The position numbers and the translations under genes are program-made. A DNA stretch of 63,764 nt, the filler included, from Guillardia theta CCMP2712 (lineage: Eukaryota > Protista > Cryptophyta), in NCBI RefSeq assembly GCF_000315625.1. It is 6 parts of 6 records of this genome, joined end to end, with 100 filler letters (N's around TTAATTAATTAA, not from the genome) between each part and the next. Parts side by side here need not be neighbours in the genome. Positions count along the whole stretch, not along the records: positions 50,372 to 57,005 come from NW_005434367.1; 5 more parts are not named here. One strand, 5' to 3'. Position 1 is the first letter of the stretch, and each line of letters begins with the position of its first letter. Below the pieces are notes generated by a model. That model was not told the DNA's origin, ran no database searches, and saw only the letters and a program-made list of their open reading frames with translations. Below are positions 13,486-57,105 of the stretch, one piece after another.

Positions 13486-16350
13486 AGTCTGTCATGTTGT
13501 CTGCAAGGTGGTCATCGTCTCTGTCCGTTCTCGTCCTCTCGTCTCGCTTCTTCCTCCTACCATCACCATCGCTCTCCCACTCGCTTCTACCTCACACTCC
13601 CAGGTTCCCGCCATCTCGCTACTCCTCTTTCCGTTCTGATGCGGGCCTGCTTTTAGCCATTTCCGTTCCGAAGTCGACGGTCAAGTTCCGACTGAGTTCC
13701 GGCGGCCGCCCGGCCCCGGGCCCCCAGCGGGCCGGCGGGGCCGCCCCGCCCGGGGCCCGGCGGGAACTCAGTTAGTTGTCACAACAGTAGTGTCAGAGCA
13801 GACAGGCTGATCGTGCATCGTACCATAGTACGGTCGGCCCGTCGTTTTCGGGGTGACGCAGTTCGACGGCCCGGGCCGGGACGGCGCGGGCCTCGGCGCC
13901 AGTCACTGAGTGACTCAGGGCTCCGGGGCCCCACTGAGCCCGGCCCGGCCGACAACCCCGGGCCCGGCAGTCGGACTCCGGGCCGCCTCAGCAGCCGGAG
14001 AGATTGGAACTTGAAACTCGTCAGGCGTAGTCCAAGTAGAAATCCACCCCCTCAATCCATATCCCTTGAACGGGTCATCTTCCATTGTACCAGCTACCCC
14101 ATAAATTGACTGCTATCGTACCGGTAGTGACCTCTACACCTTTCCCGGACCCCCTTCAACATACTCAATACCCATGTTTTCCAATGACCCCTACCCCCTG
14201 TAAAAATGATATACCCACCCACCATTCGGCCCCCAGTATCTTTCCTCCACCCTTCTTCAAAAAGTAAATCGGACCGCTTCAGTACCAACACCACTGAAGA
14301 CCAGGGGTGGTCATTTACCTACCCCATTCCATCGTCCAATTTACGATGGCAGGGTGGGTACGTACCTTTTTTGAAGCTTCAACGGACCCCCACCCCTCTT
14401 CATAGTTCACTATTTCATTACCAGTCGACCACCCCTTCATTCACTCTCCACCCACCCATACCTTTACCAAGACTTCTCGCTCTTTGTACCCCCCTCATTC
14501 CTCTTCTTCAAGTACCCCTCACCCTACCCTCGGGGTCTGCAGTGAAGCGTAGAGGTCTAAGGGGACCCTATTGGTCATACCTAGGTCATAGAAATTTGCC
14601 TATTTCCTAGAACCTTCTATGCTATGTTGAAGGGGGGTGCTACCAAGTACCCCATATTTTAGGAAGATAATCAAGGTGTTTCTAGGGGTAGGGGTGTTAA
14701 CCCCTTACCCCCATTTTCCGATCTGTTGCAAAGGGTAGAGGGATGCAGGGTGGAGTCTAAGCGGTGGGTACTTTGGCGGGGAAAAAATGGGGTGGAAAGG
14801 AAGTCTTGGGAGGGGGTAGTGTCCCTTATACCCTGTCAGAAGCGCGGTTATGGCAGGGAATGGGAGCGAAGGGGGAGAGATCAGGAAAGAGAAGAGTAGA
14901 GCAGGAGAAGAAACTTGTCAGAACGAACCTGAGATCAGTGATAGAGGAGGTGAGCAGTTAGAGGTGGGGTTGAAGCATGCAGGAGAGAAGAGGTGAGGTG
15001 ATCCAGAGCCTTTGTGGCGAGGAAGAATGAACGATGCTGCTGCGGTCAAGGGAGGAGAGGACGTGAGGGAGCAAAATATTACCATCGGAATGATATTGCA
15101 ACCATCTTTACAAAGAGGAGAACCGTCTGTCAATCGTGTGCATTGCAGGAGAGAAGCCCAGGTGACACAGGTTTCGTAAACATTCGTAACGTGCAAGGGT
15201 GTTGCCTGAATCACCTAGGGATCCTAAGGCCTTGTATTATAATGCGACATCTGAGGATGCAAACAGCAGGATGAAGTGTTTTCTGTTTCATTGTCAGCCA
15301 GATGAAGTCAGCGAGTGGTTAACTTGTGCTCTGTTGCAAGGAGGCAAAGTGGGTCCAAGCACATCAGTGGGTGCCTCGACGAGAGCAGGGGCAGGGGCAG
15401 GGGCAGGGGCAGGGGCAGGGGCAGGGGGAGGCATTTCAGTCTTGCCTGTCTTTTCCTCTTCATCTGGATTGGTTGTCTGACATGAGGATTTCAGTATCTC
15501 TCGACCAGTATGAGCTGTAGGATTCTTTGCGGAATCTACCTCAGGTTTCCTCCTCCTCCTCCTCCTTTTCCCTCCTCCTCCTTTTACCTCCTCCTCCTTT
15601 TACCTCCTCCTCCCTCCTCCTCCTCCTCCCTCCTCCTGCCCTACTTCTCCTCCTCCCTCCCCCCCCCTCCCCCTCCTCCTGCTTTCTTTGTCTCTCATCC
15701 TCTGATCGACTATCCAGCTCTGTGCTGTTCTCCGCCGGCTACGCAGCTCACATCGGACCACTCGGACGGATGGCAGCTGCTCCTCGTCACAACGTAATTC
15801 TCCCGCCATCATCAACTCCTCCTCTTCCTCTTCTCCTTCCCGTCTCCTCTTGCTCTTCCTCTTCCTCTTCCTCTTCCTCTTGCTCTTCCTCCTGCTCTTC
15901 TCCTTCCCGTCTCCTCTTGCTCTTCCTCCTGCTCTTCCTCTTACTCTCCTCCTTCCCGTCTCCTCTTGCTCTTCCTCTTGCTCTTCTCCTTCCCTTTTCC
16001 TATCCCTTCCCCTCGCGCCGTCATCCCTATTCCGACATGTCTTCATCCTTGTGCCATCCTCTCCCTCCACGTCCTCACGTCAGCTGCGCCAGCCCCTCTC
16101 ATCCGTCCTCCAGGCCAACGGTGGCGACCTGTCGCTCCGGCTTCGAGGAGGAGAAGCTGCATCCTCTGCAGGCAACCATCTCCTCCTGCTTTCTCCTCTC
16201 CTTCTCTTGCACTCCTCCTCCTCCTCATCCTCCTCCTCCTCCTCCTCCTTTCCTGCTCGCCTTCTCCTGACTAGCTAGCAGAAGGATCCTTGGCAGCGCA
16301 AAGCCAGACTGCTGGTCCGCTGTCCTCTGACGAAGCGTCCATTTCTTGAC

Positions 16351-17327
16351 ATGGATGCAGGCAAGGGCAGCAAGGTCTTGAAGAAGCCGGAGTACATGCC
16401 ATGGCACCAGGTCGTGCCCTGTCCTCTCCCCTCCCTTTGCTCGCCCTCCCCTTTCTCTTGTCTTAGTTCATGGTCCTTTCCTTGTGTTTCCTACTGCTAC
16501 TTCTCTCGCCTCTCCTTTTCTCTTCTCCCCTCTCCTCCGCTCCCCTCTCTTCTTCTCTCCTTTCCTCTCCTCATCGTGCTGCCCCTGCTCTCCTCTCTCT
16601 TTCCCTCTTCTCATTGCGAATGTTCAGATCCCCGACAACAACTGGAAGACGAAGGATGGTCATTCCCGCCTTCTGCTGCGTTTCCCAGCTCATGTCCGGC
16701 AGGCTGCGAGGTTATCAAGTGGGACCCCTACCTTGAGGGCTGCAAGGGCTCCTTGCAGTACAGGTGCGAGGAGGAGCAGGAGCAGGAGCAGGAACAGGAG
16801 GAGGAGGAGGAGGAGGAGGAGATAGATTTTGAAGGAGGGGACTGAGGAACAGGAGGAGGAGGAGGTTGATGTGAGGAGATTGGTGCGGGACTGAGGCGGA
16901 GGAGGAGGAGGACCTGGATGTTTAACGCTGCCCAGGTACGGGAGGTACAAGCAGAGGAAGGAGCATATCATCAACACTTTCGGTTCTCTGGAGAAATTCT
17001 CTGAAGGGTGAGGGACTGACGGCAGTACGATGATGGTGTTGGTGATGGCGTTGTTGATTTGATGTTTTTGATCATGATGATGATGATGGATATTTTGTCT
17101 CTGTTGTTGATGTATGTCACAGTTCATGATGGATATGGAGATGGTAGAGAAAATGATGATTGTGATGATGATGATGATGATGTCGTTTGTTTTCTTCGTA
17201 TTGCTTCTTCAAAGTGGATTATATTGGGTTTTTCACTCTGCCTCTTAGTTTTCATACGTATGGCGTTCATCGCAGCAAAGACCCGAACCGCCCAGGTGAA
17301 CACCACCACCACTACAACGACAACAAG

Positions 17328-17358
<31 letters not shown>

Positions 17359-17757
17359 CTATCATCATTGTTACTGTTCTCCTCCTTCATCTTCTCCACC
17401 TTCTCATTCGCTGACTTTGCTGCCCTGATTGCACTTGATGTTCTTTCTGATATCGTCTCACACATCTTGTTTGAAACTCTTCATCTTTCGCTCATGCTCA
17501 CTTTACTTCTCTTTCCCACAGGCATCATCGCTACTGAATGGGCACCTGGCGCCAAGTACTTGGTGTGCCACATGCAGTGCGAGTGATGGGAAGCAGGAAG
17601 GAAATGCAGAGGGACGGAAGTGGAAGTGAAAGGACGTGGAGGAAGAGAGGGAGGAAGAGGAGACGGGAGGAGGACGAGGAGGAGGAGGAGGAGGGAGCAG
17701 CAGCAGCAGGACGAGATGAAGACATTGACGGTAATTTTCAGGCACTGATGGGAGATT
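16351..17757 (+). CDS. 1,4-alpha-glucan (starch/glycogen) branching enzyme, N-terminal part, cut by an assembly linker
   Basis: Spliced reading DG|CEVIKWDPYLEGCKGSLQYR|YGRYKQRKEHIINTFGSLEKFSEG|FHTYGVHRSKDPNRP|GIIATEWAPGAKYL|ALMGD matches the GH13 branching enzyme N-terminus/CBM48 (DPyL....l.yRy...gsLe.Fs.Gy..fG...EWAPgA....l.GDF). Confidence 0.85.
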
Positions 17758-17801
17758 NNNNNNNNNNNNNNNNNNNNNNNNNNNNNNNNNNNNNNNNNNN
17801 N

Positions 17802-41745: not shown

Positions 41746-42356
41746 ACATGCCGCGGTCTGCATCTGCGCATGCAGCCTCGGCATGGTGAGCTACAGCGCT
41801 CGGGTCTTCCTTGCGGAAGGGTAGGGGGGTAACCTGCCATGAGGTTTCTTCCGGTAAACCGTCCTTGTTTCCCCTGGTGTACCAAAGACGGTCGGGATAG
41901 GGTATCTTCCATTTCCACTTACTGCTGCCGCTTATGCATCCCGAGCAATACGACAGCAGGAGTCGAGGCGCGGGTCACATGGTGCGACCCTTCTGGAGGA
42001 GCTCCAGATGAGAGCGGCAAGTCTCCGGCGGGGGAGGAGCTCTCGCTCGNNNNNNNNNNNNNNNNNNNNNNNNNNNNNNNNNNNNNNNNNNNNNNNNNNN
42101 NNNNNNNNNNNNNNNNNNNNNNNNNNNNNNNNNNNNNNNNNNNNNNNNNCGTATTGCTCGGGATGCATAAGCGGCAGCAGTAAGTGGAAATGGAAGATAC
42201 CCTATCCCGACCGTCTTTGGTACACCAGGGGAAACAAGGACGGTTTACCGGAAGAAACCTCATGGCAGGTTACCCCCCTACCCTTCCGCAAGGAAGACCC
42301 GAGCGCTGTAGCTCACCATGCCGAGGCTGCATGCGCAGATGCAGACCGCGGCATGT
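41746..42356. repeat. 207-bp inverted repeat around an N gap (41746-41952 vs 42150-42356)
   Basis: Identical ORF translations on opposite strands; the right arm starts at the gap edge. Confidence 0.9.
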
Positions 42357-43700
42357 TTTTGATTCTTTACTCAAAGTTGAGTTAAAAATCATGATCAGTA
42401 CGAGGACAATCCGATCGGATGATCAGGAGAGTCGACTCAGGAGGCAGTAGCCTGTGACGGACACTGCCGGGCAGAACTTCGGAACGTACGGTCGCCTATC
42501 ATGGCAGTGACCCGCCGGTAGTACCGGGCCCGGCCCGGCGAGCCTCGGAGGCTAGTGACCGACGGTACTCGGCGTAGTACCGCCCGGCCCCCGCCCGCGA
42601 GGCTAGTACCCTACCGTACCGTCGGATCAAAGAGGACCCTACCGTCACTGCCATGATAGGCCGCATAGGCTTTTTTAAAGTTATTATCATGGCAGTGACG
42701 GTACTACTAGGCTAGGGTCCTCTTTACTGACGGTAGTCACCCCAGGGCCGATCACTACCCCCTTTTTATCAGATAAAAGTACCGGTGCTTCTCTCCGGCC
42801 CGGACTCCGCCGGGGAGGGAAGGAAGGAACGTTGTAGCAAAAGGATTCAGTGACGGACCGTACCGTTACCGTACGGGAGGGAAGGAAGGAACGTTACAGC
42901 TAAAGGATTGACCGTTACATGGATGCCCAATGGAATTAAAAGGGATTTGATGAATAAACCCTTCGTTTTCGGATTCCCCCGTGCCAATGGAAGAATCGGA
43001 AGGATAGGCGCTCATTGCGTTCCCTTCACTCGCATGCTCTCCACCTCCTCTCTGACAAACATGCCATCAGCAGACGAACACGTTGTCAATAGATCAGCTC
43101 TTCTCTCCCTGTCCTCACTTGACAAAACTCTTCACCTTCAAGCTTCCGTCAGACTGGGACATGGAATGATTCTGACCTTGAGAGACTTGGCGTCCAGCTA
43201 ACCCTGTCATATGCATACATATGTTCTATACACACTTGTTTGACGTCATAGCTCCTCCTCACCTTCAAAAGAGAAAAGCAAAAAAATGTTGCATCAGCGA
43301 GTAACGCAGTGTTTGACTCCCAGGTTGATGAAAAGAATCCGGTTGGCCTGCAAGCCATGCAAGGACGCGAGGCTCAAGTGCGACAACTTACAGCCTTGCT
43401 CACGGTGAGGATGAAGGACGGGGTGGAGCTGATTCAGAGGAAGAGGGGGAGGAGGAGTGGGTGGTGGAGGTGGTGGAGCAGGAGGTGTGGGGGGCTGTGA
43501 GGAGTAGGAGTGGGGGCGAGGGAAGAACGGGAGGTGGGGATGGCGTGTAGTCTTGGCGTATGTGTGTGCAGTTGGTCTGCTAGTCTAGACCGCCTGGTCT
43601 CATGTCACCTCCTCGTCTTGAGACGGGCGTGTTTCTGATGTCTCTCTTTGATCGACTCAGATGCACTCGGCTGAACATCGGAGAGAGCTGCATCAGGACG

Positions 43701-45281
43701 ATGGAGGAGAAGGAGGAGAGGAGGAGAGGTTGCAACTCGTGTATCACTTGCAAGATCGCCAAAGCAAAATGCGACGAGGGTCGCCCATGCGGGCGTTGCA
43801 AGCGTCTTAGGCGGGACTCGAGATGCATATATGAGGAGCTACAGCCCATTCAACCGCGCAGGCTGGATGAAAAGGAGCAAGAGGAGGAAGCAATCGAAGA
43901 GCAAGAAACGAGGCACTTGAGGAAGAACAAAAAGCAGAACTCTATGCCGTCTGAGCATGAGGCTATCGCAGAAGGGCAGGCGCAGGAGATCCAAGACGTC
44001 CAGCAGCTCTCTCTCCCTCCTGACCATCCCGCCAGGTGGCAGCAGCTGCAGGTAGAGAGGCCGATCGACTTCTGGATACGCAGCCTCTCCTTCGACAGGC
44101 CGTCCCTGCTGCGCGAGCATATGAACTCCATGGGCTGGCCGGACCGAGTGCTGGCCCGACATTGGGAGTTCGGCTTCAGCTCCAAGGAGCTGATGAACAT
44201 CTTCGTCTCGCTTCCTCCTTACCTGCAGCAGGTGACGCGACGAGCTCTGCATGCGATCGAGATCATCATGGCGGACAAGATGGAGAAGAAAGCTCGGACT
44301 CCGCAAGCGAAGCTGCTGATGGAGAGCGAGACGGTATCGGAGCAAGACCTGGAGCTAGAGAAGGCGTTCTACGAGCAGCAGAGCTTCGGGGTGATCAAGC
44401 AGCATCTGCATCCATCTACGGGGAAGCGGGCGCATGTGTACATATCGGATATCCTGTGCAAAATCATCGGGCTACATGCGGAGGAGGCGCTGGCGAGGAT
44501 CGCGAACAGGGAGCTGTCGCTGATCACGACGGAGTTCGGCTACTTGTGCTACGTGATGTTCGGGACCTGGTTGTATGCGACGAGCCCGGGGCGTCCATTC
44601 AGTCTCGTGGGCTGTATCCGAGATCTAGGGAGCAGCGGAGATACAGGCTGCGTGGTGACGAGGTTTGTGCAGCAGCAGGAGTTCGACTGCCATGGGCGGG
44701 TGAGGTCGATGAAGACGTACATGCTGCCGGTGAGACTTGCATGGGTGGGTGGGGGGGGAGGGGAAGGGGAGGGGAGGGGGGGCGGGGCGGGGAGCTCAGA
44801 AGAGAAGAGGAGAGAGAGGAGGGAGGCAGGGAGGCTGACTGGAAAGCTGCAGCTGGACAAGGAAGGCTTCAAAGCCTCGGCGGAGCCTCCGGACAGTCCT
44901 TTCGCTCTGTTCAACAAGCACATGACTGGCCAAAGAGACTACGAGACGTTGATGAACGACTTCGAGTCCGACATGTTCGCGGTGAGCAGGAGAGGCTGGC
45001 TGCTTGCTGTAGCGACTGACGGTGGGAGGGGGCAGGGGGAGACGATCTTGGGGATGCAGAAGTCGAAGCAGGGGATGGAGCGGCTAGAGGCGCTTGGGAG
45101 GGACCTGGAGCGGATGTACCATCCGTTTGTGGAGCATGCAGAGAGGATCCTGCAGGAGAAGTCGCCTGGGGGGCGAGTAGGAACGCTGGCTGGGTCTCTA
45201 GGCCCGTTAGTGTCTGGGAGCTCCGGAGGGCCTTTCGGACTGGGGACGGTGTCAGGTCAGCAGACGGTCACTGGGTTGTAG
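43701..45281 (+). CDS. Zn(2)-Cys(6) GAL4-type transcription factor; further 5' exons from about 43060 possible, introns near 44730-44830 and 44982-45036
   Basis: SCITCKIAKAKCDEGRPCGRCKRLRRDSRC fits Cx2Cx6Cx5Cx2Cx8C. Confidence 0.88.
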   Translation: MEEKEERRRGCNSCITCKIAKAKCDEGRPCGRCKRLRRDSRCIYEELQPIQPRRLDEKEQEEEAIEEQETRHLRKNKKQNSMPSEHEAIAEGQAQEIQDVQQLSLPPDHPARWQQLQVERPIDFWIRSLSFDRPSLLREHMNSMGWPDRVLARHWEFGFSSKELMNIFVSLPPYLQQVTRRALHAIEIIMADKMEKKARTPQAKLLMESETVSEQDLELEKAFYEQQSFGVIKQHLHPSTGKRAHVYISDILCKIIGLHAEEALARIANRELSLITTEFGYLCYVMFGTWLYATSPGRPFSLVGCIRDLGSSGDTGCVVTRFVQQQEFDCHGRVRSMKTYMLPVRLAWVGGGGGEGEGRGGGAGSSEEKRRERREAGRLTGKLQLDKEGFKASAEPPDSPFALFNKHMTGQRDYETLMNDFESDMFAVSRRGWLLAVATDGGRGQGETILGMQKSKQGMERLEALGRDLERMYHPFVEHAERILQEKSPGGRVGTLAGSLGPLVSGSSGGPFGLGTVSGQQTVTGL

Positions 45282-45799
45282 ACTAGTAGCGGCTCTTCCG
45301 GTCGGAAGCTTTTTTGTTTCCTGACCGCTAGTAAACTCAGTTATCAGTATCATACTGCCACCGATTGAGACCCGGGGTGACACTGAGTTCAGGGGCCCGC
45401 CGGGCCCGGTCTCAGTTTACTTGAACTCCGGCCCTGGAGGCCACGGCACTGCGGCAGTAACTGATCCGTGGCATTTCAAAGTTATTAGCCTGGTGACTTT
45501 AACTTCAAGCTGCACCGGGACTTCAACAACCTGCGGCACTGGCAGGGACTGCGCGGCCAGTCACCCATTTGAACGCCCTGCCGGGGCCCGCCGGGGACCC
45601 GGCAAGTGGGCCGCGTCGCCGCCGTGTGCTGGGGCGGGCCCAGGCCCAGCCTGTGACTATTCAGCGAGGCCGCCGATGATCACGGTAACCCCCCCCCCGN
45701 NNNNNNNNNNNNNNNNNNNNNNNNNNNNNNNNNNNNNNNNNNNTTAATTAATTAANNNNNNNNNNNNNNNNNNNNNNNNNNNNNNNNNNNNNNNNNNNN

Positions 45800-46600
45800 G
45801 AGCCGGGCCGAACGTCCGAACGCTGCATTGGTTACAAAATTCACGTCTTCAACGCCAGTCACTCCCACTACCAATTCAACATCATTGCTGGTGGCGCCTG
45901 CTTGTTCACCTTCAACGTCATCATCCATCTCATCATCATGTTCATCTTCATACGAAGCATGCGCCTGTGATGGACCTGCTTCCTCTTCGGCTTCATCATC
46001 GACTTCCATGTCATCGCCATTGATCTGCATATTTGGGTGAGTGCCCTTCTTCATGCGCTTCGCTTTTGATTGCTTGATCTTGTCCCTGACCCGCTCCTTT
46101 TGCGACAAATAACCGAAGAATGCTACTAATGCATCGTATGGCAATGGCAAAATAAGGTCGTCCAAGGTTTCATTCAGAGCTGCATGATATCGTGGGTGAG
46201 ACCTGAAAAAAGCTATGATAGCATGAATGCGGTATGCGTAGTTCCTCTGCGTACTAAGACTGACCACTTTTGACTGCAATTCTCGAAATGCCTGGATGTT
46301 CAAATCAAGTCCCCCTGAACCAATGACTCTGCGATCCTGGAAGACACGCAATAATTCTTCGTCAGTGCGAGCACTGACCCGCCGTTTATTCGAAGGTGTT
46401 CTTTGAGTCACGGTGTTGTTATGGGCTCCTTGGTTGCATTGCCCACAATAGTTCATATCATCTGTGCCTTTCAGAGTACTAGCACAAAGATGATGAAAGG
46501 GTTTGTTGCAATACTGGCAGACTTTCAACTGAGCCTCAGGTTGCCCTCGCATAACACATGAGGCTTCATACAAGCATGTCTGCCCAGCCGGTGCCGACAT
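45800..46600 (-). CDS. Crypton-type tyrosine recombinase, N-terminal part (PHD-like finger plus core-binding domain), cut by linker
   Basis: C..C..CQYCNKPFHHLC..YCGQC, then SLSTQRNYAYRIHAIIAFF..LPLPYDALVAFFGYL, resembling the ST..nY integrase N-domain. Confidence 0.6.
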
Positions 46601-48489
46601 TGTTTGCCACGATGCAAACGTTCTCCGTGACTCGATATGTATACTTGCAATTGTGGTGGAATCTGTGAGATTCTGTGTCCCTGGCAGGGTTCACTCTGAT
46701 GATTGTGATAGCAACGAGGAAAGATGCCCAGTCTTCCCCTTGTTTGATCGCTTCGGCTTCTACAATGGCAAGTGGGGTGCATCCACACCCGGTAGTGTGC
46801 GACCCCATGGCTTGCCGACCAGCAATATCTCCCGGCTGTACCCCTTAGTACCCTATGGGATTGAGTGTCAGTAAACGGGTGCCGTGGTACCCTACCCATC
46901 TTGCGATGTAACGTATACCACCCCCCACCCATCTCCAGGCTTTCGTGCTCTACATTACTTCTTAAATTAAAATTGTTATGTGTCACTACTCGTAGTACTT
47001 AACGTTGTACCAAAGTCTTGCAATTTAAAATTTGAATGTAGAAGTTGTAAAAATTTCGCTCCATTGATTGGCTAAATCGTGCAGATAGCTGTGCGAAAGA
47101 ATTGGGTGTTGAAGGACCGGGTCATTTGTCACATTTTAAATCTCCCCTCACCAGCGCCCTTTTTTTTGCTTGATTTTTGAGTTCAAATTTAAGGCCACCA
47201 AATAAATAACCGTTGTCTATAACATTTTTGAATAAATCAATACATGTTTTTTTTTGGGTTTTTCCTCGCGCCCTAGCGCCCAACATAAAAGCATTGAGCT
47301 CATAAGGGCGCTAACTTAAAAAGGGTTATACTTCACGAAAAAAAAAGAGGCGCATTTTATTACTGTTGTAGGACGTATTTACTGGTACAAAAGGACTGTA
47401 CCGGATATCCAGAGATTCCACTCAAGTTCCACGACAATCATGGTACACATGCCTGGTACAAATTTGTACCAGGTCTTTCACACTTAGCCATTTCGGCGTT
47501 GCTTTCATGGCGGATCGTTGCGGTTGCGCATTCGCCTTGGTCAGGTACTTGTGGGCGTCGGAACACCTCCTCACCCATCACATGACCCCTGAATCCAGGC
47601 TCCCGATCTTCCCTCCAAGTATCAAGACGACAGCTCAAATTCAAGGTTGACTTGCCTTTGAAGTCCGATAGTGCTCAAGTCGCACATGCTGGCTTTGCTC
47701 ATGGTTTGACTGTCCCGTCTCGGACTTGCACTGAACCGTCACAGCCTTGCACTCCAGTGTGCAGACAATTCACTGATGGTGGTGGGAACGTTGTCATCAC
47801 GTTGTCATCACTCATCAATATGCAGCATCTAGATGTGGTCAATGCCAAAGAAGTAACATCTCTCCAATCATGATAAACCCCTGAGCTTCAAACTCCATTT
47901 CACCCCTCATTCGCCCCCATGATCATGAATCTGTACCTCATTTGCCCCCATGATCATGAACCTGTAACACCTGACGATATGCATTACTGTGGAATATGGT
48001 TGACACGCAACGTTCCTTTTGGAACATAACTGACCCTGAATCCAGCTTGGCATCAGTGCATGAAAATCCATAATGCCGTACATGACAATATGCACTCCAC
48101 AGATCATGTTTAGCTTGTCATCAAGACAGTGATTCATGCGAATGTCTCCTCCATCACCATCCATCACCAACATGCCAGATGGCAGCTGATGCCACGGCAT
48201 CTCACAACCTCAACTCCAACAAAGCATACTCCGGCATCCCTTCCCTGTCACATTATCCACCATCCCCTTGATTTGCAGTGCAGTATGATACCTGATCAAC
48301 TGCATTGTCTGTTGCTCTCATTGTCATCATCATCCCAAAAAGTACCCTTGAGTATATCACAACCTACCATCGCTTTGGCATCGTAGCGAGACTCATTCTT
48401 TCCAACATTCCATTTCCACATGAGGGCTTAACACAGATGTATCAACTCAACAATGATTTCATTCAGGAACGAACTGTAAATTCTCTACA

Positions 48490-50371: not shown

Positions 50372-51004
50372 TTTCTCCCAGGGGGGAGGAAACCCTCCCC
50401 TTAACCCCCCTGTTTCTCGACGGGATCCTGCCGGTCGGGCCGGTCAGTAGACCGACTGCAACCTTTCAGCCCCCGCCTCAGACCCCCATGGAGGCCCGCC
50501 AGGAGGCTAAGTGTCCGGAGATTGGCCGGGGGCCTGATCTCTCCGGGCGGCCGTGACCGGTCAGCGGACCGTGTCAGCAGGCCCGTGACATGTCAGCCGG
50601 CTGACAGGGGCCGTGACCCGGCTGACAGGCTCACCTGACCGGTCACGTGACACATCACGTGACCGAGACAAGACTTTTTTATATCGCAGATCCAAAAACC
50701 CATAGGACATTTCTCCCAGGGGGAAGAAAACCTCCCTTGACCCCCCTGTTTCTCGACGGATCCTGCCGGCCGGGCCCGTCAGTAGACCGACTGCAGCCTT
50801 CAGCCCCGCCTCAGACCCCCTGGAGGCCCGCCAGGAGGCTAAGTGTCCGGAGATTGGCCGGGGGCCTGATCTCTCCGGGCGGCCGTGACCGGTCAGCGGA
50901 CCGTGTCAGCAGGCCCGTGACATGTCAGCCGGCTGACAGGGGCCGTGACCCGGCTGACAGGCTCACCTGACCGGTCACGTGACACATCACGTGATCGAGA
51001 CAAG
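50372..51004 (+). repeat. 332-bp tandem repeat, left part (partial unit plus unit 50674-51004)
   Basis: Near-identical to the units at 56033-56905. Confidence 0.95.
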
Positions 51005-51405
51005 CATTCCATGGCATTTACTAATGCCCGTCCGTTGTTGTTTTCGAATGGGGTCTTTGGGCCCTTGATTTTTCATCCGCGTTGCCGTTGAAATTTTGTA
51101 CCGTAAGTTTTGAACTGCCTTGAAATCCTGATATGTTTTCATCATTCCTGCAAGCTGTTTTATTCTTATATGAGTTGTTTATCAATGAACTTTATCATTT
51201 TCATTTTTGAAAAGGTTGTTGTTCGGCTACACGCCTTTACACGCGGGCCGCTAGAGGTCGGATCTTCAATTCAAACATCATGCCCCCCCGGCCACTGAGC
51301 TGATCATATCCAGATTTCTCTTCCTCTGCCCGTCGCTATGCCATGCATCATGTGTAGGATTTTCCGCTCTTCCGTTCACTCGAGTTTCAAGTGACAACTA
51401 TAAAC

Positions 51406-54203
51406 ATGTCGGAAGTCTCCCTGGCTTATCAGCCGACCATAACATTTGGAGCTGCTTTTGGATCAGGGTTCAGTCAACGTCCCTTTGTCAGATGCTTGTT
51501 TGCAGATGCATCTATACATTTTTCATTACTACGTCAAACATGGTTTCAAGCTCCTCCTCTTGATTGCAATGATATGGAAGAGTTGATGAGATTCTTCTGG
51601 TTTCAAATCGAATCGCGTCCAATGACAATTCTTCAGAGAATTCTGCCAGCTAGAACCGCGAATTATGGACGATATTATATCAGACACCAGTCAAATAGAG
51701 GTTTGGAATTCCTTGCTGCATTCGAGGGATTCGTAAAAGAAGATGGCACCCCAGACGTTCTTATGTTCCTGACAAGGATCGGACAGGGATACATGTTCTC
51801 TTCTACCTCAATTTTTGGCAGCACATTTCGTCGGTACTTCAAGCTTCTAGAGGACTACAACACATTGCAGAATGAGAACGCACGTCTAAATCAAGAGATT
51901 GTTGCTTTGCGGGAGAAGTCAGAACAATTGAAACCTTTATTTGATGTTCAGAAACTCACATTTGCCAACTTATGGCGCACGATTTTTCCGAAGAAGGAAT
52001 ATCCACAAGGTGTTGACAGCATGTCAGAAAGTGATCATCTCGGATACCTGAGAACAGTTTTGAGTTGTCTACAGCCCGTCATTTGTATTTTGGAATCTTG
52101 CTTGCAAAACTTGAGTCCTGGTTATTCAATCAGCAAGATGTTTGGTTATCTGATTGCAATACCTCAGAGAAAAACCTCTGTGTTGAATTTGGAAAATTTT
52201 CTTTCCGGTTTTTCATCCTCGATCACAAAAACTCTCAGATGCCGTATCCTCTCAAACAATTCGATACGTATGGCTCTGCGTAGAATTTCTTCATGTTTGA
52301 TGCCGACTGCTGAACAAATTGCAAGGGAGTCCCTGGAGAGGGGAATTTCGCATAGCTCTATTTGTCATGTATACTCGATGTATCACTACACGGGTATGAT
52401 GCCTTGTCCCAAATTGGTCACAACTTCAAGAGCTCAGATCAAAAAGCATGTCCAAGAATTATTGGGGCTTGTGGAAACTGCAGATGGATACAGAATTCCT
52501 CTTGAAAGGAGACTCGAACTGCATTTGATGGAATACATGGAACAACAACATGTTCATCTGTTGGACATCAAAAAGTTGCTTACATTGCTTGCGTTCGACG
52601 GAACAAGACTGGGTTCATCTGCTCAATCTAACTCATCGCATTGTGAATTTACCCTAACCTGCGCAGCTGTCTTTTCAAGATTTGTGGAAACACTTGTTAG
52701 GCAGCAGGAAGATTTTCTTAATTCCCCACTGTCTTTAGCTACATTTCTTTTAATATGTATGGATGATACTATCGAAAATGTGAAGCGAAATTTTTGGGAA
52801 ATGTATTTGCAAGAGCTGATTGCGCTCATCAAAGACACTACCTTAGATAATGGGAAAATTTTAAAGGCTGGGCTGCATTTCTATCGCGATCCTGAAACCA
52901 ACCAACTTACCTGTCTTGGAGGTCGGGCACGGACAGCATCTTCTCTGGAAGATGTTCCAGAGGTGGTATTGCCCCTTGAAATTTACTTCAAGGGTGACAT
53001 GAAAGGGTTTTGGAATCTGGTTGCGATGAAAGGTATCCGTGGAACGCACTGCTGCTTGTTTTGCAACATCAGTACAAGTGCAAAGCATGAGATGTTTCAC
53101 ATAATCAATGTCGAGACAGAGCAATCTGTTTCTAATTTTTGTGCGGAAGTGTCGATACCTGTAGATTGCTTTTGGATTCTCAACGACGGTGCAGCTGAAG
53201 GCGGTTCAAACATTGTTCAATTATGTATGTTCAACCGCCAAACTCTCAGTCAGGCTGACAAGGCTGCTCTGCGAAGTTCAAGATCATCAAATATGTTGCA
53301 CGCAGGGCAAAGGGTAGTGGTTTTGAAGCAAGATGAATCTTTCACGCGACAACATGACATGCTCAACCAATGTGGCTTAACATGCAAAAGTATGATTCTT
53401 TGCATGCTTCATCTCAAGCTGAGGATTACTTCATGCTTTGTCAAGTGGTTTTACAAAACAGCCACCAAGATGAGATTGCTCCAAGCTGTCAATCGTGTAT
53501 TGGTGACATCTGGAATCAATTACAATCTGGAAGGATCATCTGATAGACTACCAAGCTTGAATGGTGAGCAGTGCGATGATATGGTGGAAGTTGCTCTACC
53601 AAGAATTGTTGATGTGTTAATCAACGATTCTGTACTGAACAATCAGTTCCAAGAGGTTTTCAAGATCTGGTCTCGAATCCTTTCTACAATCACAAAAACC
53701 CACAGAAATTATTTTCAACCCGGAGAGATAGAATCCCTACAAGGAAGGATCAATTCGTTTGTAATCAAGTACGTGTCTTTGACTGGCGACAAACAAATGT
53801 TTTCAGCAATTTACTTCCATATGTTGAGTTCGGGACATGTCTCAGACCTTTTCCGTCATCACATGGATGTGAATGAACTGCCCTTAGGACTTCTCAGTAT
53901 GAGTACCAACGAGTTAAGACATAAGGTAGAGTTTGCATTGAACTTCGAACCTCATTCTTGCGTACTTAATGTACTTATCAGTTGCGGGGAAGAGGAGCAT
54001 GGAGGCAAGCGGGTGCCCAAGCGAATAAGAACATGAAAAGGGATCTAGCGGCGGCAGGTTTGGATAAAGACAACGATGATCCTGAGGTTATCAGGCAGGC
54101 AGCGAAAAGACACAGAGGTTTGTACACGTTCATAAACATGGCGTGTAACCAGTTTGTCACGGGTAAAGCAGTTGAAAACATGAAGCAAAAATTGAAAGAA
54201 TAA
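51406..54203 (+). CDS. RAG1/Transib-like DDE transposase, about 913 aa; exons 51406-53925 and 53982-54203
   Basis: Ordered RAG1-core motifs: AFDG (D at 52597), NSPLSLATFLLICMDD (cf. NSELCCKPLCLMLADE), KGDMK (D at 52996), HCCLFC (ZnC2), CMLHLKL, SLNGEQC, YFHMLSSGH (ZnH2) and LGLLSMSTNELRHK (E at 53911). A 56-nt GT-AG intron continues in frame to LRGRGAWRQ. Confidence 0.88.
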
Positions 54204-54213
54204 AGCAAAAAGA

Positions 54214-55350
54214 CTAAGGTTGTGGTGGACAAGGTTGTTGACATTTGTATCTCTCCCATAGGACTCTTGATGGCGTCCCTCCCACGCTTCCAATGCCTCC
54301 AAGTGACCATACAAAGTTACCATTGCGAGTGGATACAACCAATGGCGAGGCTACAAACATTTGTGTCAGATTGTCTTGTAATTGAGGAGAGTTTTTGCAT
54401 GGGAATTCCAAGAAAGTTTGAAATGACTTATCTTGCAAAATCACTTCTGGAATGGTCCACGAATATTTCCATTCTCTCCTTTCAACCTTCAAATGGTTCC
54501 ATAATTGTGCTGGAATGAGTCTCAACAGTGCACAAAATGAAATCTCATGGCTTTTGAATTCATACTCACGAGTTCCCTTCTTCTCAAAGGTCTCACTTCT
54601 TGACTTCAACCACTGATTCAGCTTCTTTTTGACTTCAGTCATATCTCGACAAATCCGATTGTACTCCGACGCAGAACAGAAAGTTGTTTGCACCATCTTT
54701 TCAACGAGGGATGCCGGGTTTGCCATGGAGAAGTGAGAGATTTCACAGTATTTGTTCTTTTTGACATTGTCTTCATGAAAAAATATGTACCCATGCACTC
54801 TGAAATTATCCTCGAGATCATCGTTGGCATGATCCAACATGCAAGGAAAGCTGAAGAAACAAATGTTTTGTATAGCTTTTACATCGACCGTATCCTTGTA
54901 ACTTGATTGAAAGCAATCACGGTTTCCAATTTTGGTCAAAATTCTTTTCAGGGCCACACAGGGTACTCGATTAGTTGTAATGTTCTCGTCTACATGTTCC
55001 AAGAGGACTCGATCATACATGATGTACACTTCGACAACCTGTGCATCTGAATCCAGCGATTTGATCATCCCCAGTCGATTCACTTCAACGCCCCTGTGAT
55101 CTTCACACTGATATTGAACCCCTATGCCAGGCTCAAGTCTGATATTCAAATCACTCCTTGGCTTGTTCCAGTACATCCTGGGCAAGTCTCGATCATCAAC
55201 TGACATCTGCAGGATCATTGGAAGCCTCAAATCTTCAGGTATCTTTGACTCATCACAAGTCTCTTCCTGCTCCAAGGATGTGTCGAAATCTTCCTGCCTT
55301 CGCCTTTTCTGAATTCCATTTGATGCTGATACACGACGAGGAAGATTCAT
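54214..55350 (-). CDS. Transposon accessory protein, 378 aa, with putative BAH-like domain
   Basis: Uninterrupted ORF inside the TIRs, stop 10 bp from the transposase stop. It has an NLS-like KRRR, and EPGIGVQY..RLGMIKSL..VEVYIMYDR..RDCFQSSYKDTVDVKAIQNICFF resembles the BAH consensus. Confidence 0.7.
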   Translation of the reverse strand: MNLPRRVSASNGIQKRRRQEDFDTSLEQEETCDESKIPEDLRLPMILQMSVDDRDLPRMYWNKPRSDLNIRLEPGIGVQYQCEDHRGVEVNRLGMIKSLDSDAQVVEVYIMYDRVLLEHVDENITTNRVPCVALKRILTKIGNRDCFQSSYKDTVDVKAIQNICFFSFPCMLDHANDDLEDNFRVHGYIFFHEDNVKKNKYCEISHFSMANPASLVEKMVQTTFCSASEYNRICRDMTEVKKKLNQWLKSRSETFEKKGTREYEFKSHEISFCALLRLIPAQLWNHLKVERREWKYSWTIPEVILQDKSFQTFLEFPCKNSPQLQDNLTQMFVASPLVVSTRNGNFVWSLGGIGSVGGTPSRVLWERYKCQQPCPPQP

Positions 55351-56032
55351 TTGTTCACAGTGTCTTAACTGGGGCCGCTGTGATGAATAGGGGAGCAGGC
55401 GGTGAGGAAAGGGAGCAGGGAGGGGCAGGGAAGCATGGAGAGAGGGAGGGGAACCCCCCACACCTGGCTAGTCCGATGTACGACCGGTAATTTATCATAT
55501 AATTTAGGCATAAAGGTGGGGTAGGAGTATATACCCGTAGGCGAGTGACCCCTACGATTTCAAGAAAAATATTTGCTGTTTGATTGGAAACATGGGAACC
55601 TGTGTTCCAGAAGTACCCTACAACACATAGGGTAGGTAATGACAAAATAACCGGTACAGGAAAAAAACGATTGCCGTTGCTAGCTGACGTACGACTCCTT
55701 GATTTGAAAACAAAAATACTTATTGGCTGGATTTACTACACTCGTCAATTGCTGACACTAATAAGATTTCATGGGCGTGTATCGAAATATACGAATAACC
55801 CTACCCCCTCAATATCAGACAAACATACCGGTACACAGGGTAGAGAACAGCCAAGAGGCGTGTAAGCCGGAACTCAAATGCTTAAAACAAATATAAAAGA
55901 GTACTGAGTGGTACAAATGGATCTGGTACAAAATTGACTAAAGACTGTATGCTTATGATCAAATTAACAGGTACAAGTGTTTGTTAAAAGGATATAAATT
56001 TATAATTGGGCATTAGTAAATGCCATGGAATG

Positions 56033-56905
56033 CTTTTTTATATCGCAGATCCAAAAACCCATAGGACATTTCTCCCAGGGGGAAGAAAACCTCCCTTGAC
56101 CCCCCTGTTTCTCGACGGATCCTGCCGGCCGGGCCCGTCAGTAGACCGACTGCAGCCTTCAGCCCCGCCTCAGACCCCCTGGAGGCCCGCCAGGAGGCTA
56201 AGTGTCCGGAGATTGGCCGGGGGCCTGATCTCTCCGGGCGGCCGTGACCGGTCAGCGGACCGTGTCAGCAGGCCCGTGACATGTCAGCCGGCTGACAGGG
56301 GCCGTGACCCGGCTGACAGGCTCACCTGACCGGTCACGTGACACATCACGTGACCGAGACAAGACTTTTTTATATCGCAGATCCAAAAACCCATAGGACA
56401 TTTCTCCCAGGGGGAAGAAAACCTCCCTTGACCCCCCTGTTTCTCGACGGATCCTGCCGGCCGGGCCGGTCAGTAGACCGACTGCAGCCTTCAGCCCCGC
56501 CTCAGACCCCCTGGAGGCCCGCCAGGAGGCTAAGTGTCCGGAGATTGGCCGGGGGCCTGATCTCTCCGGGCGGCCGTGACCGGTCAGCGGACCGTGTCAG
56601 CAGGCCCGTGACATGTCAGCCGGCTGACAGGGGCCGTGACCCGGCTGACAGGCTCACCTGACCGGTCACGTGACACATCACGTGACCGAGACAAGACTTT
56701 TTTATATCGCAGATCCAAAAACCCATAGGACATTTCTCCCAGGGGGAAGAAAACCTCCCTTGACCCCCCTGTTTCTCGACGGATCCTGCCGGCCGGGCCG
56801 GTCAGTAGACCGACTGCAGCCTTCAGCCCCGCCTCAGACCCCCTGGAGGCCCGCCAGGAGGTTAAGTGTCCGGAGATTGGCCGGGGGCCTGATCTCTCCG
56901 GGCGG
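56033..56905 (+). repeat. 332-bp tandem repeat, right part (units start 56033, 56365, 56697; last truncated)
   Basis: Exact 332-bp period with only a few substitutions. Confidence 0.95.
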
Positions 56906-57105
56906 AAGCACCCGATGATTTGCATATTTTGCACCACCTTTGAAGCTTTGCACCAATTTTTGGGCTTCCATGAGGTTTTGGCTTCTTGCAAGTACTGTGA
57001 AAGTANNNNNNNNNNNNNNNNNNNNNNNNNNNNNNNNNNNNNNNNNNNNTTAATTAATTAANNNNNNNNNNNNNNNNNNNNNNNNNNNNNNNNNNNNNNN
57101 NNNNN

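Follow-up and report, generated by a model that had tools for sequence, protein, structure and literature searches.

A recently mobile two-gene DNA transposon of Guillardia theta with a predicted RAG1/Transib-type transposase core and its own partner gene

The element and its two genes

The window analysed here is a stretch of 63,764 nucleotides, joined from six parts of the genome of the cryptophyte Guillardia theta CCMP2712 (GCF_000315625.1); its positions 50,372 to 57,005 come from NW_005434367.1. Positions 51005–56032 hold a transposable element with two convergent genes, open reading frames 1 and 2 (ORF1 and ORF2), between terminal inverted repeats (TIRs). We regard it as very probably an autonomous cut-and-paste DNA transposon of the nuclear genome, with a RAG1/Transib-type DDE core and a partner gene of its own. 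The element is 100% identical over 5,028 bp to locus L006 on the G. theta CCMP2712 scaffold JH993271.1 (48,088 bp; GCA_000315625.1), where by arithmetic it occupies record positions 42088–47115. The algal host supposed in an earlier reading of the sequence (the original prediction) is therefore G. theta CCMP2712. The features of the element are listed in Table 1.

The left repeat, CATTCCATGGCATTTACTAATGCCC, starts with CATTCC, and the right repeat complements it without a mismatch, as predicted. By our own estimate, the chance expectation for such a 25-bp pair in 6.6 kb is ~2e-8. The left terminus is also present in other copies, with different flanks there. The right end is fixed independently by reads and contigs of other copies, which switch to unrelated sequence exactly past 56032. 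Both flanks consist of units of a 332-bp satellite with a GC content of 60–65%, against 40–45% in the element. The satellite runs right up to 51004 and resumes at 56033, and because its units abut both ends, the boundaries of the element are exact. The left junction is bridged by a contig of run X1 (50965–51448, zero differences); at the right end, no bridging contig was found among those listed.

ORF1 starts at the ATG at 51406 and stays open for 876 residues when unspliced. Removal of a predicted intron gives a model of 840 + 73 = 913 residues, in agreement with the ~913 residues first proposed. Contigs of X3 and X5, two runs that are likely RNA, lack the intron, as does a single raw read from the RNA-seq run X24; no contig of run X1, taken as DNA, has the spliced form. 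Splicing links ...NELRHK to LRGRGAWRQAG..., which places the family motif GRxAWR in register after ELRH, as in the homologue P0003 (ELRHRICGRPAWRKG). A BLASTP comparison of exon 2 with the tail of the L003 homologue is not significant, and exon 2 is supported by the RNA joint and the short in-register motif.

The stop codon of ORF1 ends at 54203 and that of ORF2 lies at 54214–54216 on the minus strand. The gap is 10 bp, as predicted, so the 3′ untranslated regions must overlap the opposite gene. Contigs of X3 and X5 cover both genes, and one unbroken X3 contig spans 51332–53925. Expression is thus shown for the subfamily and not specifically for this copy, since the variants in the ORF1 contigs are those of a different copy with 99% identity. 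Contigs of both runs cross the two gene ends at 54113–54493; overlapping tail-to-tail transcripts could yield double-stranded RNA and self-silencing.

Table 1. Features of the element and its flanks, in window coordinates
Feature	Position	Strand	Evidence or remark
Left flank, units of 332-bp GC-rich satellite (host target)	50372–51004		Same satellite at L003:10191–13187
Left TIR, 25 bp	51005–51029	+	Perfect complement of 56008–56032
Subterminal TTGTACC, 92 nt from left end	51096–51102	+	Motif count; conserved between subfamilies
ORF1 exon 1, 840 codons, transposase with predicted RAG1/Transib-fold core	51406–53925	+	Open frame; AlphaFold core; X3 contig
D398 codon, proposed first catalytic Asp (FDGTR)	52597–52599	+	Invariant in members covering the column; end of predicted strand 388–398
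D531 codon, proposed second catalytic Asp (KGDMKG)	52996–52998	+	Invariant where covered; directly after predicted strand 524–530
C550-x-x-C553 codons, putative counterpart of RAG1 ZnC2 pair	53053–53064	+	Invariant where covered
H805...H811 codons, putative counterpart of RAG1 ZnH2 pair	53818–53838	+	His in 10/11 (H805) and 10/12 (H811) covering members
E836 codon, proposed catalytic Glu (NELRHK)	53911–53913	+	Invariant where covered; in predicted helix 834–847
ORF1 intron, 56 nt, GT..AG	53926–53981	+	Spliced joint in X3 and X5 contigs and one raw X24 read
ORF1 exon 2, 73 codons + stop	53982–54203	+	Translation; X5 contig joins exon 2 to exon 1
ORF2, 378 residues from first ATG, conserved partner with BAH-like lead	54214–55350	-	Open frame; convergent homologues; omega; X3/X5 contigs
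Three subterminal TTGTACC, 57, 102 and 117 nt from right end	55910–55976	-	Motif count; kept in 2.1-kb L008 derivative
Right TIR, 25 bp	56008–56032	-	Exact reverse complement of 51005–51029
Right flank, 2.6 units of 332-bp satellite	56033–56905		Tandem-repeat comparison

The ORF1 and ORF2 proteins

The structure of ORF1 was predicted by AlphaFold2 from an 18-sequence alignment without templates, with the unspliced 876-residue frame as input. The core, residues 297–852, is modelled with a predicted local distance difference test (pLDDT) score of ~90, and the last 36 residues of the frame, which are intron read-through, score below 50. In a Foldseek search, the best 45 matches are all RAG1, HzTransib or BbRAGL, with E-values down to 8.5e-9. 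Alignment with VIA-align over ~410 residues gives Z scores of 17.9 for HzTransib, 17.7 for RAG1 and 17.1 for BbRAGL. The next family, represented by the P element transposase, follows at 11.8, and Hermes at ~6. A search of 48,161 representative chains, independent of Foldseek, returns the same ranking. The predicted structure has the RAG1-type domain order (DDBD, preR, RNH, ZnC2 and ZnH2) with an RNase H-fold DDE core, consistent with the RAG1-family branch that had been proposed.

In the ESM Atlas, RAG1 clusters match ORF1 at 0.90 by features and at a template modelling (TM) score of ~0.70 by shape. DUF1280 is carried by 51% of the members of the best feature match, a cluster scoring 0.93 (181/256 features), and is also represented in the cluster that heads the shape search.

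The motifs of ORF1 follow one another as FDGTR (D398), KGDMKG (D531), CCLFC (C550/C553), LNG (718–720), YFHMLSSGH (H805/H811) and NELRHK (E836). The original prediction had listed these RAG1-core motifs in this order together with an NS..DD motif; the DDE triad, CxxC, LNG and H...H are found, and NS..DD was not identified. The two zinc-ligand pairs, CxxC and HxnH, lie in the right order between the second Asp and the Glu, with a spacing of Hx5H in ORF1. The corresponding spacing in RAG1 ZnH2 is Hx4H. The aligned ranges, ORF1 299–847 and mouse RAG1 461–973, put E836 at E962, provided that the last 11 residues align gap-free. ORF1 would contain an RNase H fold bearing D398, D531 and E836 and interrupted by a putative zinc-binding insertion with C550/C553 and H805/H811.

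The N-terminal ~300 residues are family-specific, contain a coiled coil and have no match to the RAG1 NBD, RING or zinc-finger regions. A Pfam search of residues 1–300 returns coiled-coil noise only, with no RING or N-terminal zinc region, and the segment is cysteine-poor by eye. Within the core, residues 547–654 (window ~53044–53367), between CxxC and the invariant C666/H669, give weak LysM-like matches (Z ~5) in an exhaustive structure search. This segment possibly represents an insertion into the ZnC2 region that is specific to the family.

Sequence searches of Pfam and PDB with ORF1 as a single sequence, the 18 members and the family profile (phmmer and profile; E up to 1–10) return coiled-coil noise only. 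No match is found to the RAG1 Pfam entries PF12940, PF26100, PF26101 and PF26104 or to RAG1 and Transib PDB chains. An exhaustive HMMER search of 1.84 billion representatives retrieves 27 proteins. Those looked up come from G. theta, Hanusia phi or metagenome contigs, besides one from Schistosoma (P0026, 1905 residues), which was rejected as a relative because its match is weak and spurious and its Pfam domains are unrelated. The family has been found only in cryptophytes and metagenome contigs.

ORF2 has no Pfam match (six family members, E up to 10) and no PDB match (two profiles). Neither a Kelch nor a PHD match appears in the six members, and the family matches neither the BAH entry PF01426 nor a solved BAH structure. 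An AlphaFold model from a 5-sequence alignment has a pLDDT of 35, too poor for a fold search. The nearest ESM features are those of BAH at 0.85, under the 0.9 level for more than a lead, and two conserved stretches (VVWFYRK... and CxQSxYxDxV) look BAH-like by eye in the alignment. A link to BAH chromatin readers is thus a weak lead. RAG2-like partners have a six-bladed Kelch propeller, often accompanied by a PHD. ORF2 is not detectably RAG2-like, and a cryptic propeller appears unlikely.

The association of the two genes is conserved. ORF2 homologues, with E-values from 3e-66 to 1e-9, lie directly downstream of and convergent to ORF1 homologues in four further lineages: L003:3109–7197 on the same scaffold as the window copy, the metagenome contig L004, L009/L012/L013, and L010. 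The tail-to-tail pair therefore occurs in five lineages including that of the window, with stops 10 bp apart here and 15–61 bp apart in the other four. Across these lineages, identity to the window copy falls in parallel, from 38% to ~25% for ORF1 and from 37% to ~21% for ORF2. Both genes are under purifying selection (omega 0.2–0.3). The comparison of L012 with L009 yields omega values of 0.26 (ORF1) and 0.21 (ORF2), and that between subfamilies of the window element yields 0.17–0.32 for ORF2. Since the same convergent pairing persists in five diverged lineages at low omega, the pairing is old and under selection. All ORF2 homologues found come from Guillardia, Hanusia or metagenome contigs; four have been placed, all within elements of the family, and the remainder are transcripts or unplaced. 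The absence of a RAG2 signature, together with the layout conserved in five lineages, agrees with the earlier proposal of a different partner, and we take ORF2 to be a probable cofactor in transposition.

Copies, termini and target sites

Several copies of the element are present at different sites. A second copy, 99% identical, occupies 9777–13314 of L007 (JH993283.1). It is truncated at both ends, has a 6-nt insertion (CAGTTC) after 53643, and has lost 300 bp (window 54166–54465) with the 3′ ends of both genes. The JGI contig L002 (3300017164) has the same deletion. The gap in L002 was considered as a second intron and rejected, as its ends are not GT..AG and the deletion is also genomic on JH993283.1. 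In X3 and X5, the form with the deletion predominates. An X3 contig reaches 51332, past the truncation point assembled in L007; the L007 assembly may be incomplete, or an additional copy may exist.

A 2.1-kb deletion derivative at L008:9355–11449 on JH992986.1 keeps both TIRs. Another copy begins at L003:13526, within the satellite but at another point of the unit than the window copy; L003 is a second stretch of JH993271.1. In addition, L012 and L013 are 99.9% identical over ~4.6 kb and differ in their flanks. Near-identical copies at different sites and a derivative with both ends therefore establish mobility, and together with the spliced RNA they bear out the recent activity suggested originally. 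A rough depth reading of run X1 indicates about two full-length-like copies of the window subfamily.

The termini are CATTCC in the window subfamily, CATTCT in L010 and CATATT/CATACC in the L012 lineage. The CAT start noted in the original prediction thus recurs in three lineages, and CAC-starting, heptamer-like termini are not found in these three lineages with known ends. No TIRs were detected for the L003:3109–7197 and L004 elements. A TIR scan of JGI metagenome contigs gave one match, cut off at the contig end.

Comparison of neighbouring units gives the uninterrupted satellite as GAGACAAG-A-CTTTTTT, with the element inserted between ...CAAG and CTTTTT..., and an X3 contig shows the same uninterrupted form. 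The window copy is flanked by no duplicated target, and its site lacks a single A present in the satellite consensus. A hidden duplication of a palindromic CATG target, with AT duplicated, would explain the CAT...ATG ends but is ruled out, as the uninterrupted satellite reads AAG-A-CTT. Among six insertions with both flanks, none has a 5-bp target-site duplication (TSD). The window copy, L008, L013 and L009 are without a direct repeat of at least 2 bp, and the flanks of L012 and L010 repeat CG and GTG, respectively, possibly by chance. No target motif is common to the six sites. The target specificity envisaged earlier is accordingly not supported at the sequence level, because insertion points vary, within the satellite unit too; the satellite may still be preferred as a region.

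At least three insertions or fragments of the family adjoin the satellite, namely the window copy, L003:13526 and the L007 copy at ~13314. The word depth of the satellite in run X1 is ~16,000–17,800, against ~5–10 for the element. Taken loosely, the satellite amounts to thousands of units and roughly 1% of the genome.

The motif TTGTACC occurs four times in the window against 0.68 expected, always subterminally and facing inward, and it is kept between subfamilies though the spacer to the TIR has diverged. The conserved inner motif AATTTTGTACC (51096–51102 and 55925–55931) is set 92 nt in from the left end and 102 nt in from the right. These distances differ by 10 bp, about one helical turn, in a manner reminiscent of the asymmetric spacers in recombination signal sequences (RSSs) and RAGL TIRs; this may be a coincidence. 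By analogy with RAG1 and Transib, ORF1 would bind the CAT-starting 25-bp ends and the TTGTACC motifs, excise the element and reinsert it. Unlike in these relatives, reinsertion would leave no consistent TSD. ORF2 would act as a family-specific second subunit or cofactor, co-evolved with ORF1 and fixed tail-to-tail.

Several further observations concern other copies and their surroundings. Raw reads of run X24 at 55943–56032 derive from another copy, with differences at 55943, 55960 and 55996. They enter the right end from the unrelated flank GAAGGAGCAATCC... and end before 55964 in a run of T, which would fit polyadenylation of a host transcript within a fragment of the element. L003:2016–2409 and L003:6805–7208 form a direct repeat (99%/90%) that comprises the 5′ part of the divergent ORF2 homologue and its upstream region, and is also found upstream of the divergent ORF1 homologue; it may be a partial tandem copy. 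On the G. theta scaffold JH992983.1, a fragment of a piggyBac-type transposase (PF13843, DDE_Tnp_1_7) is found at L010:18111–18601, at a distance of 6 kb from the element of L010. Several lineages of the family, 88–100% identical to G. theta copies, occur in metagenome assemblies (L001, L004, L012 and L013; ENA PRJEB17505). Runs X16 and X20, labelled freshwater metagenome, contain part of the element; G. theta is marine.

Relationship to known systems

The best structural match of ORF1 is HzTransib from Helicoverpa zea (PDB 6pqx and 6pqn), in which chain residues 21–446 align to model residues 297–847 (Z 17.9, 392 residues). The window element resembles Transib in its cut-and-paste type, in its bounding TIRs, and in a proposed DDE triad and CxxC/HxnH zinc motifs that follow one another in an identical order. 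Transib elements have a single gene, 5-bp TSDs and CAC-type termini (PMC1131882, PMC9435367), and are known from bacteria, fungi, plants and animals (PMC9435367). The window element differs in its two genes, CAT termini, lack of a consistent TSD, lack of detectable sequence similarity, and ~300-residue N-terminal region with a coiled coil.

Two-gene RAG-type elements are known from animals and from the pelagophyte alga Aureococcus (AanRAGL) (PMC9435367). In the amphioxus ProtoRAG (BbRAGL, PDB 6b40), two genes are arranged tail-to-tail between TIRs as in the window element, and the RAG1L core matches that of ORF1 at Z 17.1–17.2. In contrast to ProtoRAG and other RAGL elements, the window element has neither a 5-bp TSD nor a heptamer-like CAC, its partner gives no Kelch or PHD signal, and its ORF1 is without an N-terminal zinc domain or RING. 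AanRAGL provides a precedent for RAG-type two-gene elements in unicellular algae. Its two genes point the same way and their products are recognisable by sequence as RAG1L and RAG2L (PMC9435367), whereas the window genes are convergent and not so recognisable. The alignment of ORF1 to mouse RAG1 extends from DDBD through ZnH2 (Z ~17.5, ~14% identity). As in RAG1–RAG2, a catalytic protein is paired with a separately encoded partner. However, vertebrate RAG is domesticated and acts on RSSs, and in the window element ORF1 has no NBD match and the partner is not RAG2-like.

Spy, of the PIF/Harbinger/ISL2EU group, reportedly inserts without target duplication, precisely between AAA and TTT. The window element is likewise a eukaryotic DDE transposon that does not duplicate its target, but it belongs to an unrelated superfamily and shows no target motif. 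No paper treating Guillardia together with RAG1 was found in the literature searched. Tao et al. (2022) searched >680,000 genomes (PMC9435367), and Guillardia, cryptophytes and Hanusia do not appear in two supplementary files of that study.

Several points weigh against an autonomous transposon of RAG1/Transib type with a dedicated partner. No sequence or profile search ties ORF1 to RAG1 or Transib, so that kinship would hold at the level of fold and motifs only, and it leans on a structure predicted from 18 sequences. The match of D398, D531 and E836 to the RAG1 triad has been checked only indirectly. Neither the 5-bp TSD nor the CAC terminus, both hallmarks of Transib and RAG, is present. 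The function proposed for ORF2 derives from its conservation alone, with a model at pLDDT 35, and expression is shown for the subfamily and not specifically for the window copy, because the ORF1 contigs hold another copy's variants.

DUF1280 designates Chapaev transposases, which group with RAG1 (PMC3985635), and Kapitonov and Koonin placed Chapaev inside the Transib superfamily (PMC4411706). ORF1 could lie inside the Chapaev clade or be its sister, outside Transib and RAG proper, which would make the element a Chapaev-like transposon with an acquired partner gene. The DUF1280 clusters of the ESM Atlas, nearest to ORF1 by features and first by shape, ahead of the RAG1 clusters, fit this placement, as does the grouping in the literature. 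Yet the Chapaev entry PF06918 is unmatched by all 18 members at E up to 1, and ORF1 lacks both a RING region and, in our own reading and in Pfam, the zinc-finger domain Chapa. Chapaev has been described from animals as a single-gene element, with TSDs of 3–4 bp (Repbase) that are not seen here, and we know of no solved Chapaev structure for comparison. We consider this placement possible but doubtful. A bolder combination would rank the family as a sister of Transib, RAG and Chapaev at superfamily level, with a second subunit of its own recruited independently. In it, a BAH-like ORF2 would tether the transposase to heterochromatic satellite, as a functional analogue of the RAG2 PHD finger by a different route, and a 0-bp or slightly inverted stagger would account for the missing target duplication. 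This combination seems to us unlikely as a whole.

The other alternatives concern the status of the genes. ORF2 might be a passenger, either a captured host gene or an unrelated neighbour without a role in transposition, as its lack of a recognisable domain or solved relative and its truncation in the L008 derivative and the JH993283.1 copy would allow. A passenger is very improbable given the same convergent gene 10–61 bp from the ORF1 stop in five lineages whose ORF1s are 25–38% identical, its parallel divergence (21–37% identity) under purifying selection that matches ORF1's in strength, and the confinement of all four located homologues to elements of the family. Nor is it likely that the pair consists of domesticated host genes or is a relic no longer active. 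The L003:3109–7197 pair has no detectable TIRs, so some lineages may be immobile or domesticated, and the full-length-like copies of the subfamily number only ~two. Against this stand perfect TIRs, two intact frames, copies of 99–99.9% identity at different sites with extra flanks after 56032 in other runs, and a non-autonomous derivative in which the two ends and the subterminal motifs are preserved. We judge domestication or death of the window element most improbable.

The element is real and recently mobile, and an autonomous transposon with a RAG1/Transib-type core and its own partner remains our preferred reading. We infer the catalytic chemistry, the role of ORF2 and the binding sites. 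The family would represent a deep clade within the RAG1/Transib/Chapaev group, one restricted to cryptophytes on present evidence. Its fold, order of motifs and two-gene organisation had been known; what is new is a deep-branching family of this type with its own conserved partner and no target duplication. As this case shows, surveys that rely on sequence overlook whole clades of the RAG1/Transib superfamily.

RAG1 is the enzyme that assembles vertebrate antibody genes, and how its dependence on RAG2 arose is a central open question for the origin of V(D)J recombination. To our knowledge, all two-gene RAG-type elements described so far, from ProtoRAG to AanRAGL, carry a RAG2-like partner. The element of G. 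theta would be a separate natural case of a two-gene RAG-type machine, with the same tail-to-tail layout and a different long-term partner. The absence of a TSD would widen the known integration geometry for the RAG1 fold. It may be asked whether this fold needs, or repeatedly recruits, an accessory subunit, and whether such a subunit contributes chromatin targeting or regulation of cleavage. A culturable algal host with intact and expressed copies makes these questions testable.

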